NCBI GenBank assembly: GCA_002269645.1
Contig: NIVC01001863.1
Coordinates: 164,066-228,065 of the forward strand
Length of the DNA: 64,000 bases
Direction: 5' to 3'
DNA from: Macrostomum lignano
Lineage: Eukaryota
Shown here: piece by piece, positions 14,011 through 38,248 of the stretch
Layout: each line of letters starts with the position of its first letter
Position numbering within the stretch: the stretch's first letter is position 1
The notes under the pieces: generated by a model
What the model was told of the DNA's origin: nothing
What the model saw: only the letters and a program-made list of their open reading frames with translations
Database searches by the model: none
Position numbers and translations under genes: made by a program

Positions 14011-14939
14011 ATGACTTTCACTGGCAGGTGAGCTTGCAGACATTTACTAATTGCATTTGAATGTCTGTCTGTCTGTCTGTCTGTCTGTCTGTCTGTCTGT
14101 CTGTCTGTCTGTCTGTCTGTCTGTCTGTCTGTCTGTCTGTCTGTCTGTCTGTCTGTCTGTCTGTCTGTCTGTCTGTCTGTCTGTCTGTCTGTCTGTCTGT
14201 CTGTCTGTCTGTTTGTCTGTCTGTCTGTCTGTCTGTCTGTCTGTCATTCTGTCTGTCTGTCGACCTGTTTCTGTCTGTCTGTCGACCTGTTTCTGTCTGT
14301 CTGTCGACCTGTTTCTGTCTGTCTGTCGACCTGTTTCTGTCTGTCTGTCTGTCTGTCTGTCTGTCTGTCGACCTGTTTCTGTCTGTCTGTCTGTCGACCT
14401 GTTTCTGTCTGTCTGTCTGTCGACCTGTTTCTTTCTGTCTGTCTGTCTGTCTGTCTGTCTGTCTGTCTGTCTGTCTGTCTGTCTGTCTGTCGACCTGTTT
14501 CTGTCTGTCTGTCTGTCGACCTGTTTCTGTCTGTCTGTCTGTCTGTCTGTCTGTCTGTCTGTCTGTCTGTCTGTCTGTCTGTCTGTCTGTCTGTCTTAGT
14601 GTCTGTCTGTCTGTCTGTCTGTCTGTCTGTCTGTCATTCTGTCTGTCTGTCTGTCGACCTGTTTCTGTCTGTCTGTCTGTCTGTCTGTCTGTCTGTCGAC
14701 CTGTTTCTGTCTGTCTGTCTGTCTGTCTGTCTGTCTCTCATTTTCCCAAGCAACCCAACCGCCCCACATCACTCAGAGTGACCCACTTGGCCACATCCCT
14801 GGCTCTGGTGCTGCTGCTCATCTGCGCTCTCCACACTGAGGCGATCGGGTTGAGGCCCTGGAAGTACGACCGGATTTACAGAGATGAGCCTTCGGACCTC
14901 GGCGGACTGCTGTGGGCCCGCTCCTATATTCCCCGCTGA
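14011..14939 (+). CDS. Secreted peptide precursor, paralog 1 (59 aa): MTFTGRVTHLATSLALVLLLICALHTEA-IGLRPWKYDRIYRDEPSDLGGLLWARSYIPR; exons 14011-14027, 14777-14939
   Basis: ATGACTTTCACTGGCAG|GTGAG donor and CTCAG|A acceptor join in phase 2 to give a hydrophobic signal peptide ending TEA. The same structure recurs at 28107 and 38248. Confidence 0.8.
14061..14735. repeat. (TCTG)n microsatellite filling the intron of peptide paralog 1
   Basis: Direct reading, with interspersed TCGACCTGTT units. Confidence 0.97.
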
Positions 14940-15394
14940 ATCCCAGATGCTGACAGTGCAAATGGGCAGTCGTGTTTACGGGCAGTCGTGTTTAAGTGTT
15001 GGTTTTTGAACTTTTCAAATTGTTTAATTGATAAATACACTGCTTGGCTTACAACCGCGCTATCAAATTATCGGACCGAGTTTGTAGCTATTTGATAAGC
15101 AAGTCGGAAGTGAAAATGGCACACTGAAAATTGTCACTAAATTTTTCAAGACCAGCAGCACTGTTCAGAGAATCAGTGAACACAGCGGCTCTAACTTTTT
15201 ATCTTTAGGCATGTGCACTACTCTGTGCCTTGGGGTTAATGGCAAAGGTAGAGCCAAGCCGAGGTTCTAATTTAGCTTTAAATTAATGTGACTGCACTTT
15301 GGAATCGAGCCCCGGCCGCTGGCAGATCAGAGCGCCGCCTTAGACCGCTAGGCTGCGGCCCCTTCCGCAAGTCCAATGTTCCCCGTCCCCGTCT

Positions 15395-15752
15395 AAGACA
15401 GACAGATCAAACAGACAGACGGACACTGAGACGGACGGACAGACAGACAGACAGACAGACAGACAGACAGACAGACAGACAGACAGACAGACAGGCAGAC
15501 AGACAGACAGACAGACAGACAGACAGACAGACAGATCAAACAGACAGACAGACGGACACTGAGACGGACGGACAGACAGACAGACAGACAGACAGACAGA
15601 CAGACAGACAGACAGACAGACAGACAGACAGACAGACAGACAGACAGACAGACAGACAGACAGACAGACAGACAGACAGATCAAACAGACAGACAGACAG
15701 ACAGACAGACGGACAGACAGACAGACAGACACTAAGACAGACTAAGACAGAC
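15395..15752. repeat. (GACA)n microsatellite
   Basis: Direct reading. Confidence 0.97.
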
Positions 15753-17073
15753 ACTCTTTTGCCGTGGCTGGACTTGCATATATGGGGGGAGCATTGCCAT
15801 TTGAGGCTTATTTAGAGCTTATTTTGGCCCAACCCAAAAAGTTGGGCCAATCCGCCCGGGACCGCCCCCCCCCCCACTACTTTAAAATCGTGGGTCCGCC
15901 ACTGATGGCAATAACTGAATTCTACAAATACTTGCAGTCGTACGGTAAAACAAAATGTAAAAACTCAATTGTAAAAAAAACATATCTTGCACTATTTAGT
16001 AAAGTAATTTGATTCTCTTAAAAGACAAAGTCTTTCTTTTTGCTTTGTATAGTTCGGCAGCTGTAGACGGCCCTGCATCGGAGGAAGAGGGAAAATGAGA
16101 CACCCACCTCAATAGTATCCTAATAGTACATTTGTTATACGGGGCCACAGGTCCTAAAAATATTCTGTGAGCTACCAATACCGTAGACCTTCCGAGGGAC
16201 ACTAGGTATTGCATACCGATCCGAATCCAATGCACTTTTATCCTGCTTATTGAGGACCAATCCAAATCTAATATTGAGATGATCCAAATCCACACTACTA
16301 CAAGTAGGCTGTGTATGTATCGTGCCATAACTTTACTAACTTAACTTCACTTACATAAAATTATGCGACCAAAAACCGGTGCTCGTCGAAATTGCTCTCA
16401 AGGACAAAACTATTTAGTTGTTGTTAAACTGGGGTGAGAAGCTGGGCTTACCCGCGGATCAGCCCTAAGGGGGCTCTGCCGCTAGGAGCTATTTGTGGGC
16501 CATACTACCAGGAGCATATATATAGCTCGAGAGGCCACGGTTGGGACCAGAGCTCAGGACTCTGGGGAGAGCATGGAGCATTGGTGCTACTAGCCCAAAC
16601 CTACGGTACAAGACACCGCTGACCAACAATCGAATCAGGGACGGTGCTAAGACCGAGTCCACCCAGGCCACCCCCCCCCCAGCTGACAAGTCTTTGGGTG
16701 TGCGCGATAAAAGAAATTGGATTGCGAAATGCTTGGGATACTACTCTAAGCGGTCCGAGAGCGGGTTAACCCAGAGTCTACGGAAAAGGCTTGAAAAATT
16801 TAGTTGGAGCGAGTCTGGGAGGCTTGCATCCGAGGGCGAGACTCCAGGCAGGAAGACCGTCTACCTCTATTGCTCAAGCCCAAGGGCATCACCTACCCAG
16901 CTCTATATTGGGGGCCAGGCCAAGGAGTCGGGAGAGGGGCACCCGGGGCAAGAGGACCCGGACTCAGCCGGTATCCCCGGTACGAGACGAACTTCCAGCC
17001 CAGGACGCCAATCCCCTGTCAGGATGAGAGCCAGAGACACAATAGGCAGGGAACTTCCAGAGGTGCCAGCCAG

Positions 17074-36384: not shown

Positions 36385-36515
36385 ATTCCGAAGAGTTGGA
36401 AGCGTTCATTTCTCGCTGCCCCACAGCTGTGCGGGATGCCTATTGCGGAATTTTTACAGTTGGAACAGTGACACCATTCTTCGATTCAACCTGCCGACCC
36501 TGCTGCTTCATTTTG
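36381..36515 (+). pseudogene. Putative adenain-like Polinton protease N-terminus, truncated
   Basis: ATG overlaps the capsid TGA (ATGA). MNSEELEAF..AYCGIF..RPCCFIL resembles the MNxxQL..FxGVF..PxxxIxN start of Polinton proteases. Catalytic residues are absent. Confidence 0.45.
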
Positions 36516-37289
36516 TATGAGCCATGGAATGATGAGTGCGGTGGTGGTGGCGGATGAGTGCGGCGGTGGTGGGTTCGGGGTCGGGGTGGGCGTCTTCGGG
36601 GGGCCGTCTTCCCTCATTGGCCGGGTGCCTCGGCCAATCCGGTGCGATGACGGTGGAGGGGACCACTTTCCTACTACTAGCCAAGATAAAGAAAATTGCG
36701 GCACAACGTACTACATTGCCAAAATGCTGGTTGGCCTCATCTGACAAACTTAGTTCTATTGTTTAGTCTATGGCCTGACCTTCAGCTGTGTACACAGCCT
36801 GCCTTACCTAGCCGCTATAAGTACTGTCTATGGCCAGGACCCACACAGAAGTCCTGGTTTTCAGTAGAAAGCTTCAGCTGGGAAGGAGTGTTTTAAACTT
36901 CACTCTTAAATTTGTTCACGGCACGAATTGTTCCATATGCAGTCAACAAAGGGAGTGACGTGAACTTTGGTTGGTCATGTGGATCATTCATTTGCATCTG
37001 CGCACTGTTGTCCATGGTAAAGAAGTAGTAGGAGCCCCGAGCATTTGGGATTTCGGCCCACAGCGAGTGGGTTCAACATCAGTGTTAAACACTGACCTGC
37101 GGGGGCAGAAAGCCTACTGCAAATTTACTGCCGAGTTGCTTATCGAATGCAAAATTGGTTTGGAAAGCGCATCAATTTCGTGAGACTGAGCACTTGATGG
37201 GTGCCGAAACAGCCAAGCAGTTTATTTATCAGTTCAACAATTCAACAATTTCGCAACTGCCACATCTGCACTGTCAGTATCCATGGGAT

Positions 37290-38248
37290 TCAGCCATCCA
37301 GCATGGAGCAGTCATAGCCCCAATTCCTAATAAAAATGCAACCCTCGTAGTTGATTTTCTTCATCCTGGGCTTCAGTCCGATCGCCTCCGTGTCGAAAAC
37401 GCCGATGAGCAGCAGCAGCAGAGCCAGGAATGTGGCCAAGTTGGTCAGTCTGCGTGATGAGGAGCGGTTGGCTTGCTGGGAAGCTGAGATAGACAGATAC
37501 AGACAGACAGGCAGACAGACAGGCAGACAGACAGGCAGACAGACAGGCAGACAGACAGGCAGACAGACAGGCAGACAGACAGGCAGACAGACAGACAGAC
37601 AGACAGAGAGACAGACAGCCAGACAGACAGAGAGACAGACAAACAGACAGACAGAGAGACAGACAGACAGACAGACTGACAGACAGACAGACAGACAAAC
37701 AGACAGACAGACAGACAGACAGACAGACTGACAGACAGACAGACAGACAAACAGACAGACAGACAGACAGACAGACAGACAGACAGACAGACAGACAGAC
37801 AGACAGACAGACAGACAGACAGACAGACAGACAGACAGACAGACAGACAGACAGACAGACAGACAGACAGACAGACAGGCAGACAGACAGACAGACAGAC
37901 AGACAGACAGACAGACAGACAGACAGGCAGACAGACAGACAGACAGACAGACAGACAGACAGACAGACAGACAGACAGACAGACAGGCAGGTAGACAGAC
38001 AGACAGACAGACAGACAGACAGACAGACAGGCAGGTAGACAGACAGACAGACAGACAGACAGACAGACAGACAGACAGACAGACAGACAGACAGATAGAC
38101 AGACAGACAGACAGACAGACAGACAGACAGACAGACAGACAGACAGACAGACAGACAGACAGACAGACGGACAGACAGACAGACAGACAGACAAACATTA
38201 AAATGTCAGTAGTAGAAATCTCCAGGCTCACCTGCCATTGGAAATCAT
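37290..38248 (-). CDS. Secreted peptide precursor, paralog 3 (58 aa): [58 protein letters not shown]; exons 38248-38232, 37449-37290
   Basis: ATGATTTCCAATGGCAG|GTGAG donor, CGCAG|A acceptor, phase 2, microsatellite-filled intron, signal peptide, KK site, two-Cys loop. Confidence 0.82.
37490..38195. repeat. (GACA)n microsatellite filling the intron of peptide paralog 3
   Basis: Direct reading. Confidence 0.97.

Follow-up and report, generated by a model that had tools for sequence, protein, structure and literature searches.

In conotoxin superfamilies and in the precursors of frog-skin peptides, a conserved signal peptide typically precedes a divergent mature peptide. The sex peptide of Drosophila (Acp70A) is a small product of the male gland with a signal peptide, a Trp-rich mature part and a C-terminal disulfide loop, which is transferred at mating and alters the behavior of the partner, and the precursors of somatostatin, urotensin II, melanin-concentrating hormone (MCH) and allatostatin-C carry a cyclic peptide after a dibasic site at their extreme C-terminus. 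Closer to the present case are the seminal-fluid candidates of the flatworm Macrostomum lignano: a screen covered 146 transcripts, which had been selected as tail-specific by positional RNA-seq and for an expression that differed between worms kept in isolation and worms kept in groups, and 76 of them were found to be prostate-limited and 22 fell into a class termed “prostate plus elsewhere,” mostly testis (Weber et al., 2018; PMC5977470). The DNA analyzed here, called the window, is the last 64 kb (64,000 nucleotides) of contig NIVC01001863.1 of this species, and it holds three small two-exon paralogs, g1 (ATG at 14011, forward strand), g2 (ATG at 28107, forward strand) and g3 (ATG at 38248, reverse strand). 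We interpret these genes, with moderate confidence, as a species-restricted family of prostate-expressed secretory prepropeptides, most plausibly peptides of the ejaculate (seminal fluid).

The nearest likeness is to the M. lignano candidates themselves, since the 146 transcripts include g2, which is tail-specific, responds to the social environment and was detected in prostate gland cells. As in most of that set, it has a secretion signal and no recognizable homolog. It differs from the 76 genes named Mlig-pro1-76 in that it was scored in prostate plus testes and not as prostate-limited. With conotoxin and frog-skin precursors the family has in common a signal-coding sequence that is nearly identical even at synonymous sites, a diverged mature part, and the retention of cysteines and of a processing site. 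However, no sequence similarity connects them: the intron of the M. lignano genes lies inside the signal, 17 nucleotides (nt) after the ATG, the peptides have one predicted disulfide, the gland concerned is reproductive and not a venom or skin gland, and the mature parts are diverged at synonymous sites too. The analogy with the Drosophila sex peptide and DUP99B, which includes the C-x11-C loop spacing of g2, is functional only; no homology was detected, and the flatworm precursors differ in having a Lys-Lys (KK) site and a propeptide. The layout of signal, spacer, dibasic site and C-terminal loop is also that of the somatostatin, urotensin II, MCH and allatostatin-C precursors, although no motifs or homologs are shared and g2 is expressed in prostate and testis rather than in neurons.

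Three Spliced Paralogs in the Window

The initial annotation of the window had described three genes alike in their first coding exon and signal peptide and in a phase-2 intron occupied by (TCTG)n, and all of these features were located exactly where they had been placed. The first coding exon is 17 nt long in g1, g2 and g3, and the GT..AG intron that follows it is therefore in phase 2; the signal ends in Thr-Glu-Ala (TEA). The exon-1/donor string AAGAATGAYTTYCAMTGGCAG/GTGAGC has exactly three matches (14007 and 28103 on the forward strand and 38252 on the reverse strand), as has the signal-coding string CTTGGCCACATYCCTGGCTCTG in the window, and neither was found in shuffled sequence. When profiles of both conserved blocks were run with nhmmer against the 64-kb window, no copy beyond g1, g2, and g3 was recovered, and extra or degenerate paralogs were detected neither in the window nor in the stretches of up to 10 kb downstream of the g1 homeologs.

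The introns measure 749 nt in g1, 897 nt in g2, and 782 nt in g3 and consist almost wholly of (TCTG)n, the arrays reported by TRF lying at 14062-14736, 28158-28977, and 37499-38197, respectively. Each gene gives a transcript of about 350–400 nt, in which the signal peptide is interrupted at the genomic level by the phase-2 microsatellite intron, and the spliced products have 59 (g1), 71 (g2), and 58 (g3) amino acids (aa). Exon 2 closes with the stop codon, and a block with the poly(A) signal follows 55–70 nt downstream. The 3′ untranslated sequence that the initial annotation had seen in common between g1 and g3 was borne out; it forms blocks, the second of which contains the poly(A) signal.

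Gene g1 (Mlig028075; 14011-14939, forward strand) consists of coding exon 1 (14011-14027), the intron (14028-14776), and coding exon 2 (14777-14939). Its 59-aa product, MTFTGRVTHLATSLALVLLLICALHTEA/IGLRPWKYDRIYRDEPSDLGGLLWARSYIPR (MTFTGRVTHLATSLALVLLLICALHTEAIGLRPWKYDRIYRDEPSDLGGLLWARSYIPR in full), is a derived form with neither the KK site nor the Cys loop, and it matches exactly PAA63208.1 and PAA86130.1 (Mlig028075), annotated as “hypothetical protein.” Gene g2 (Mlig003555.g1, transcript RNA815_51598; 28107-29219, forward strand) has exon 1 at 28107-28123, the intron at 28124-29020, and exon 2 at 29021-29219. Its precursor runs from the signal, ending in TEA, through a propeptide stretch of 21 letters with KK at 29145-29150 to a predicted loop peptide of 22 residues (29151-29216); an in-frame upstream ATG is present at 28050, and AATAAA at 29275-29280. 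In g3 (Mlig028162.g1; 37290-38248, reverse strand), coding exon 1 (38248-38232), the intron (38231-37450), and coding exon 2 (37449-37290) encode the signal to TEA, the short propeptide IGLKPRM, KK (37361-37356), and a predicted loop peptide of 21 residues (37355-37293), with AATAAA at 37226-37221. The g3 product is an exact match to PAA63210.1 (Mlig028162), likewise a “hypothetical protein.”

The annotation of M. lignano draws on RNA-seq assembled by StringTie/TACO and on a de novo transcriptome that was mapped, together with evidence from poly(A) and trans-splicing (Wudarski et al., 2017; PMC5730564). Because it rests on RNA-seq, the long introns of the models are backed by transcript data. 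For g2, the primers used for in situ hybridization (ISH) by Weber et al. (2018) map to 28048-28070 and 29156-29178, which gives a spliced amplicon of 234 nt against a listed probe of 235 nt and an unspliced one of 1131 nt; the probe length fits the spliced form only, so the independent de novo transcript also lacks the 897-nt intron. Spliced transcripts, on which the initial annotation had made its proposal depend, are thus on record, in the form of exact annotated proteins for g1 and g3 and of this de novo transcript for g2. Genes g1, g2, and g3 are real, spliced, expressed genes.

Expression of g2 in Prostate and Testes

The site of expression is given in Table S11 of Brand et al. (2020; PMC7336406), where Mlig003555.g1 is equated with RNA815_51598 (392 nt) and listed with its ISH primers and the pattern “prostate;testes,” credited to Weber et al. 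(2018). The hybridization in the prostate that the initial annotation had proposed was therefore already published for one of the paralogs. For g1 and g3, nothing on expression was found in the published supplements searched. The gene and transcript identifiers do not occur in the main text of the literature searched, and the supplements of Grudniewska (2018), Wudarski (2017), Weber (2018), Brand (2022), and Arbore (2015) gave no match; in the supplement of Brand (2020) the neighboring genes and primer-like strings gave no match either, and Table S11 alone listed g2. No paper was found on the peptide architecture of g2, on its paralogs g1 and g3, on the Cys loop, or on the structure of the locus.

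A Common Precursor Plan

By a heuristic check, the signal peptides have an n-region with Arg (MTFTGR or MISNGR), a hydrophobic core of 12 residues with a mean Kyte-Doolittle hydropathy of 3.07–3.21, and a c-region that ends in T-E-A, with Thr at -3 and Ala at -1. Beyond the signal, the initial annotation had considered the mature regions impossible to align. This view was not sustained once a homeolog of g1 was included, namely the 74-aa protein P0002 (Mlig033806), which is encoded on contig NIVC01000061.1 (locus L001) and belongs to the 90%-identity cluster of g1. Its sequence, which reads ...DLGGLEKKINYHGCKFIRDWGWDCSWINR (likewise given as ...IGLRPWKYDRIYRDEPSDLGGLEKKINYHGCKFIRDWGWDCSWINR), couples the g1 propeptide to a loop of the g3 type: INYHGCKFIRDWGWDCS aligns with a 17-residue stretch of g3, and its ...GLEKK site equals the ...NGLEKK site of g2. 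A single architecture results, consisting of signal, propeptide, KK, and Cys loop (INYxGCxFIRxWGxDCS), in which the cysteines are spaced C-x9-C in the g1 homeolog and in g3 and C-x11-C in g2. The propeptide is mostly lost in g3, and g2 and g3 both retain the KK-loop plan. KK and both cysteines are invariant in the three loop-bearing copies (g1 homeolog, g2, and g3), nearby synonymous sites being 43–75% diverged and thus almost saturated, and all indels among the family copies are in frame.

The ancestral precursor would have carried a signal of 28 residues, cleaved after TEA, and a short propeptide (IGLRPW...DLGGLE). Processing at the Lys-Lys site would free a C-terminal, aromatic-rich peptide of 20–22 residues, whose two cysteines (C-x9-C or C-x11-C) would form one disulfide loop. 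The predicted loop peptides have a net charge of +1 (g1 homeolog), +2 (g2), and -2 (g3). An AlphaFold2 model of P0002, built on an alignment of four sequences, reached a mean predicted local distance difference test (pLDDT) score of 62 and showed the loop as a low-confidence helix, which is too weak to judge a hairpin.

Compared with P0002, g1 of the window lacks EKKINYHGCKFIRDW through an in-frame deletion of 45 nt, and its second Cys is replaced by Arg. Of the three paralogs in the window, g2 and g3 alone could yield a loop peptide. The loop-coding part of g2 coincides with a further feature. The annotated g2 model, P0009 (78 aa, with the end ...ASQRVLAQVN), begins at the upstream ATG at 28050 and treats a 56-nt GT..AG interval (29164-29219, forward strand), from the Gly-Cys codons to the stop codon, as a second intron. 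The transcript RNA815_51598 keeps the loop-coding sequence, as the reverse ISH primer spans the supposed donor of this interval. The interval could be a genuine, alternatively used intron, or another copy may have a deletion allele that was taken for an intron in the mapping. The 45-nt genomic deletion of g1 falls at the corresponding position; the loop may be subject to alternative splicing, or else deletion alleles arise repeatedly at this spot.

Conservation Is Concentrated in the Secretion Module

Two conserved modules flank and include the signal-coding sequence. The 5′ module (g1, 13981-14061, forward strand; g2, about 28077-28157; g3, 38278-38198, reverse strand) comprises about 30 nt of 5′ untranslated region, exon 1, and the first 34 nt of the intron, and the 3′ module (g1, 14730-14843, forward strand; g2, 28977-29087; g3, 37496-37383, reverse strand) comprises the last 47 nt or so of the intron and 67 nt that encode the signal. 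Identity within the modules is 80–95%. It falls abruptly to the random level (20–30%) upstream of the 5′ module and drops sharply just after the TEA codons of the 3′ module, so that the conserved island includes non-coding sequence and identity immediately outside it is random.

At the codon level, the proportion of synonymous differences (pS) between paralogs is 0.00–0.04 over the 28 signal codons, lower than the proportion of non-synonymous differences (pN) of 0.05–0.18, and pS is 0.43–0.75 in the propeptide and loop. The difference in synonymous divergence between the signal and the downstream part was significant in every pair (Fisher p = 0.004, 1e-4, and 2e-6). Judging from these counts, the contrast between conserved and variable parts is mostly due to the near-identical 5′ module, which was most likely homogenized by gene conversion, perhaps favored by the shared microsatellite; constraint at the nucleotide level is the alternative. 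The pattern of a conserved signal and a hypervariable mature part put forward in the initial annotation therefore stands in its first half, as the signal is strongly conserved, synonymous sites included. Accelerated evolution of the mature part, by contrast, is not demonstrated for the paralogs, because downstream synonymous sites are diverged too and the signal module is near-identical.

The loop itself has a pN/pS of about 0.5–0.8 between paralogs (few sequences). In the comparison of the g1 homeolog with g3, pN is 0.23 and pS 0.43, and a CGC/AGG codon difference leaves one Arg unaltered. This excess of synonymous change, together with the invariant KK and cysteines and the retained Arg, points to selection on the peptide. 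Between g1 of the window and its homeolog, about 980 nt of flanking gene sequence differ by about 1.3%, and the last 30 nt hold nine differences (eight non-synonymous and one synonymous, in nine codons), a local burst with a binomial p of about 1e-10. This tail follows the deletion, and selection on it may have ceased; the burst may be a replaced patch or decay after the loss of the loop.

A profile search of 5.8 billion protein clusters yielded no relative of the family outside M. lignano, and an exhaustive hidden Markov model search of 1.84 billion representatives yielded M. lignano proteins only, other Macrostomum genomes and transcriptomes lying outside the searched data. The searches also returned a chimeric older gene model (P0010) and a spurious repeat protein (P0011). 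Sequence searches of Pfam and PDB gave no meaningful match.

Homeologous Contigs and a Variable Segment

According to published papers, M. lignano is a recent polyploid, and several near-identical contigs exist. One of them, NIVC01000292.1 (loci L003 and L005, joined through an exact overlap), is colinear with the window on both sides at 95–98% identity, and it lacks the part between about 20.5 and 42.0 kb of the window and with it g2 and g3. Copy number consequently differs between homeologous chromosomes. The L003 copy on this contig is identical to g1 of the window, with the loop likewise deleted.

The transposon-rich variable segment that carries g2 and g3 (20151-42333; 21.5 kb) is bounded by direct repeats of 341 nt (20151-20491 and 42005-42333) that are 88.6% identical, and the homeolog has one copy of the repeat. 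A third, weaker copy is present near 12638-12910. The interior of the segment contains fragments of long terminal repeat (LTR) elements (a gag-like DUF7083, a protease, an integrase C-terminus, and a chromodomain), a DDE fragment, a Polinton-type family-B DNA polymerase, and long microsatellites. The surroundings of g2 and g3 and the stretch that separates them contain the mobile-element fragments (22780-27248 and 32900-35392, forward strand), among them the gag-like DUF7083, the integrase C-terminal domain, a protease of retroviral type, and an open reading frame (ORF) at 24395-25381 that combines DnaJ and chromo domains. The polymerase, of Polinton/Maverick type, has 830 aa, and the older chimeric model P0010 (1077 aa) fuses exon 2 of g2 to it.

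The 21.5-kb difference may be either an insertion or a deletion. An origin of g2 and g3 as the cargo of one intact mobile element was considered; the interval holds only LTR, DDE, and Polinton fragments, and the flanking 341-nt repeats fit unequal recombination as well as any other cause. Within the segment, g2 and g3 are convergent inverted duplicates with about 380 nt of common upstream sequence. Downstream of them lies an element of 117 nt (31039-31155, forward strand, and about 36562-36678, reverse strand; 94% identical), which is probably a short dispersed repeat. Upstream sequence beyond about -35 is not common to g1 and the other two genes, and g1 may for this reason be regulated differently.

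Neighboring Genes

Downstream of the variable segment, a two-exon gene at 45018-45726 (reverse strand) encodes P0012 (Mlig016487, 71 aa, “hypothetical protein”), which has a signal peptide followed by KCIERWKLCSRSAECCTGYCGWYLAGSLETHCG. Its cysteine pattern, C-x6-C-x5-CC-x3-C-x11-C, is as in inhibitor-cystine-knot (ICK) peptides, and its best PDB matches are weak (spider ICK toxins and nemertide alpha-1; E = 0.016-0.5). Copies of a 30-nt minisatellite fill the intron, the homeologous contig carries a gene for an identical protein, and no data on its expression were found in the supplements searched. Next to it, a three-exon gene (46621-49685, reverse strand) encodes a hydrophobic protein of 142 aa resembling a multi-pass membrane protein, its two introns being occupied by a 19-nt tandem repeat (46716-47463) in one case and by (GATT)n (47801-49425) in the other. 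The microsatellite intron was considered as a trait specific to the peptide family and rejected as such, since both of these unrelated neighbors have introns filled with tandem repeats; it follows that introns of this sort seem to be common to this part of the genome. Tracts of (AGAC)n are also present elsewhere in the window.

Upstream of g1, a homolog of TCF25 (9947-11863, forward strand) is encoded by a single uninterrupted ORF of 638 aa (Pfam E = 5e-95) in an island of 71% G+C, compared with 43–55% in its surroundings. The stretches 50702-55445 and 58335-59447 (both reverse strand) together cover large single-ORF exons of an ABC transporter, with two ABC_tran domains, and an ORF of 370 aa. 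The latter has a weak match to the rhodopsin family of G protein-coupled receptors (Pfam E = 3e-10), its best PDB match being the relaxin receptor (E = 6e-4).

Discussion

An ejaculate role appears the most likely one for the family because the g2 transcript is present in the prostate, specific to the tail, and responsive to the social environment. The peptides would be delivered in the ejaculate to the mating partner, and the family would diversify by duplication, in-frame deletion, and loss, its 5′ module being held near-identical between paralogs.

Several observations weigh against this interpretation. The expression data cover g2 only among the paralogs, and they place it in the class of “prostate plus elsewhere,” outside the 76 prostate-limited candidates and with no Mlig-pro number. 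The 235-nt probe holds about 140 nt of the conserved module, and cross-hybridization with g1 or g3 is possible; g1, with its different upstream sequence, may moreover be expressed elsewhere. Splicing of 29164-29219 as in P0009 would delete the entire Cys loop. Two of the three homeologous contigs carry a g1 that has lost the loop, and one has neither g2 nor g3; the loop peptides are therefore dispensable at some copies. Finally, no proteomic evidence for secretion, processing, the disulfide bond, or transfer was found.

Some of these points would also suit young, transcribed, and largely non-functional ORFs in an unstable, transposon-rich region, with a module conserved by recent duplication or conversion only. 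The loss of the loop in g1, the position of g2 and g3 in a segment that one homeolog lacks, the excision of the loop in the annotated g2 model, the excess of pN over pS in the signal region, and the lack of relatives elsewhere are all in line with such an origin. Nevertheless, the ORF, KK, and both cysteines have been kept in three copies despite 43–75% synonymous divergence and with in-frame indels, the loop shows pN below pS between the g1 homeolog and g3 with a synonymous two-base change in an Arg codon, and expression is tissue-specific and socially plastic. We consequently regard this explanation as unlikely.

Host-defense (antimicrobial) or deterrent gland peptides, guarding for instance the ejaculate or the genital tract and diversified by pathogens or predators, could likewise be short, aromatic-rich, and closed by a single disulfide, and their genes could combine a conserved signal with a diverged mature part and a rapid turnover of copies. 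The adjacent knottin-like gene (45018-45726, reverse strand) would fit a locus in which effector peptides are clustered. However, the hairpin peptides known to be antimicrobial are strongly cationic, and the loop peptides, whose net charge is only -2 to +2, lack the strong positive charge of the cationic β-hairpin type. Neither expression data tying the family to infection, epidermis, or gut nor any record of activity was found, and a defensive role is considered quite improbable. Precursors of neuropeptides or peptide hormones, with the C-terminal disulfide-loop peptide used internally for signaling, would agree with the architecture (signal, spacer, dibasic site, and C-terminal Cys loop) and with a terminal Gly in g3 that could donate an amide, but they are very improbable here, given that g2 was detected in prostate and testis and not in the nervous system and within a tail-specific transcript set, that no relative in any other animal and no Pfam match was obtained although families of bilaterian neuropeptides can usually be traced among the flatworms at least, and that copies are lost or deleted between homeologous contigs.

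If the family does consist of ejaculate peptides, a further step can be proposed by analogy, and only tentatively: the loop peptides, as disulfide-looped products of the prostate rich in Trp and Tyr, might be a flatworm counterpart of the insect sex peptide, transferred in the ejaculate, bound by a receptor in the partner, and altering its post-mating behavior or its use of sperm. This extension seems doubtful at present. Were it true, the “suck” response or re-mating would be candidate effects, and gain, loss, and deletion between subgenomes would be the record of a sexual conflict still under way in a hermaphrodite. Gene conversion that starts from the intronic (TCTG)n would then keep the secretion module constant and allow the effector part to be swapped.

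Among hermaphrodites, M. lignano is the principal model in which seminal-fluid biology and sexual conflict are studied, yet almost all candidate seminal-fluid transcripts of this species are orphans without a name. The family described here is of a familiar kind and reveals no new kind of biology; what changes is that the orphan transcript g2 becomes a member of a defined peptide family with three paralogs and a clear processing plan. Peptides of about 20 residues with a single disulfide are within reach of chemical synthesis, and with the standard tools of M. lignano the family is testable, the natural loop-deletion variant g1 and the presence/absence variation between subgenomes being available for study. 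The locus also offers a compact case in which a secretion module is identical between paralogs while the effector part diverges.

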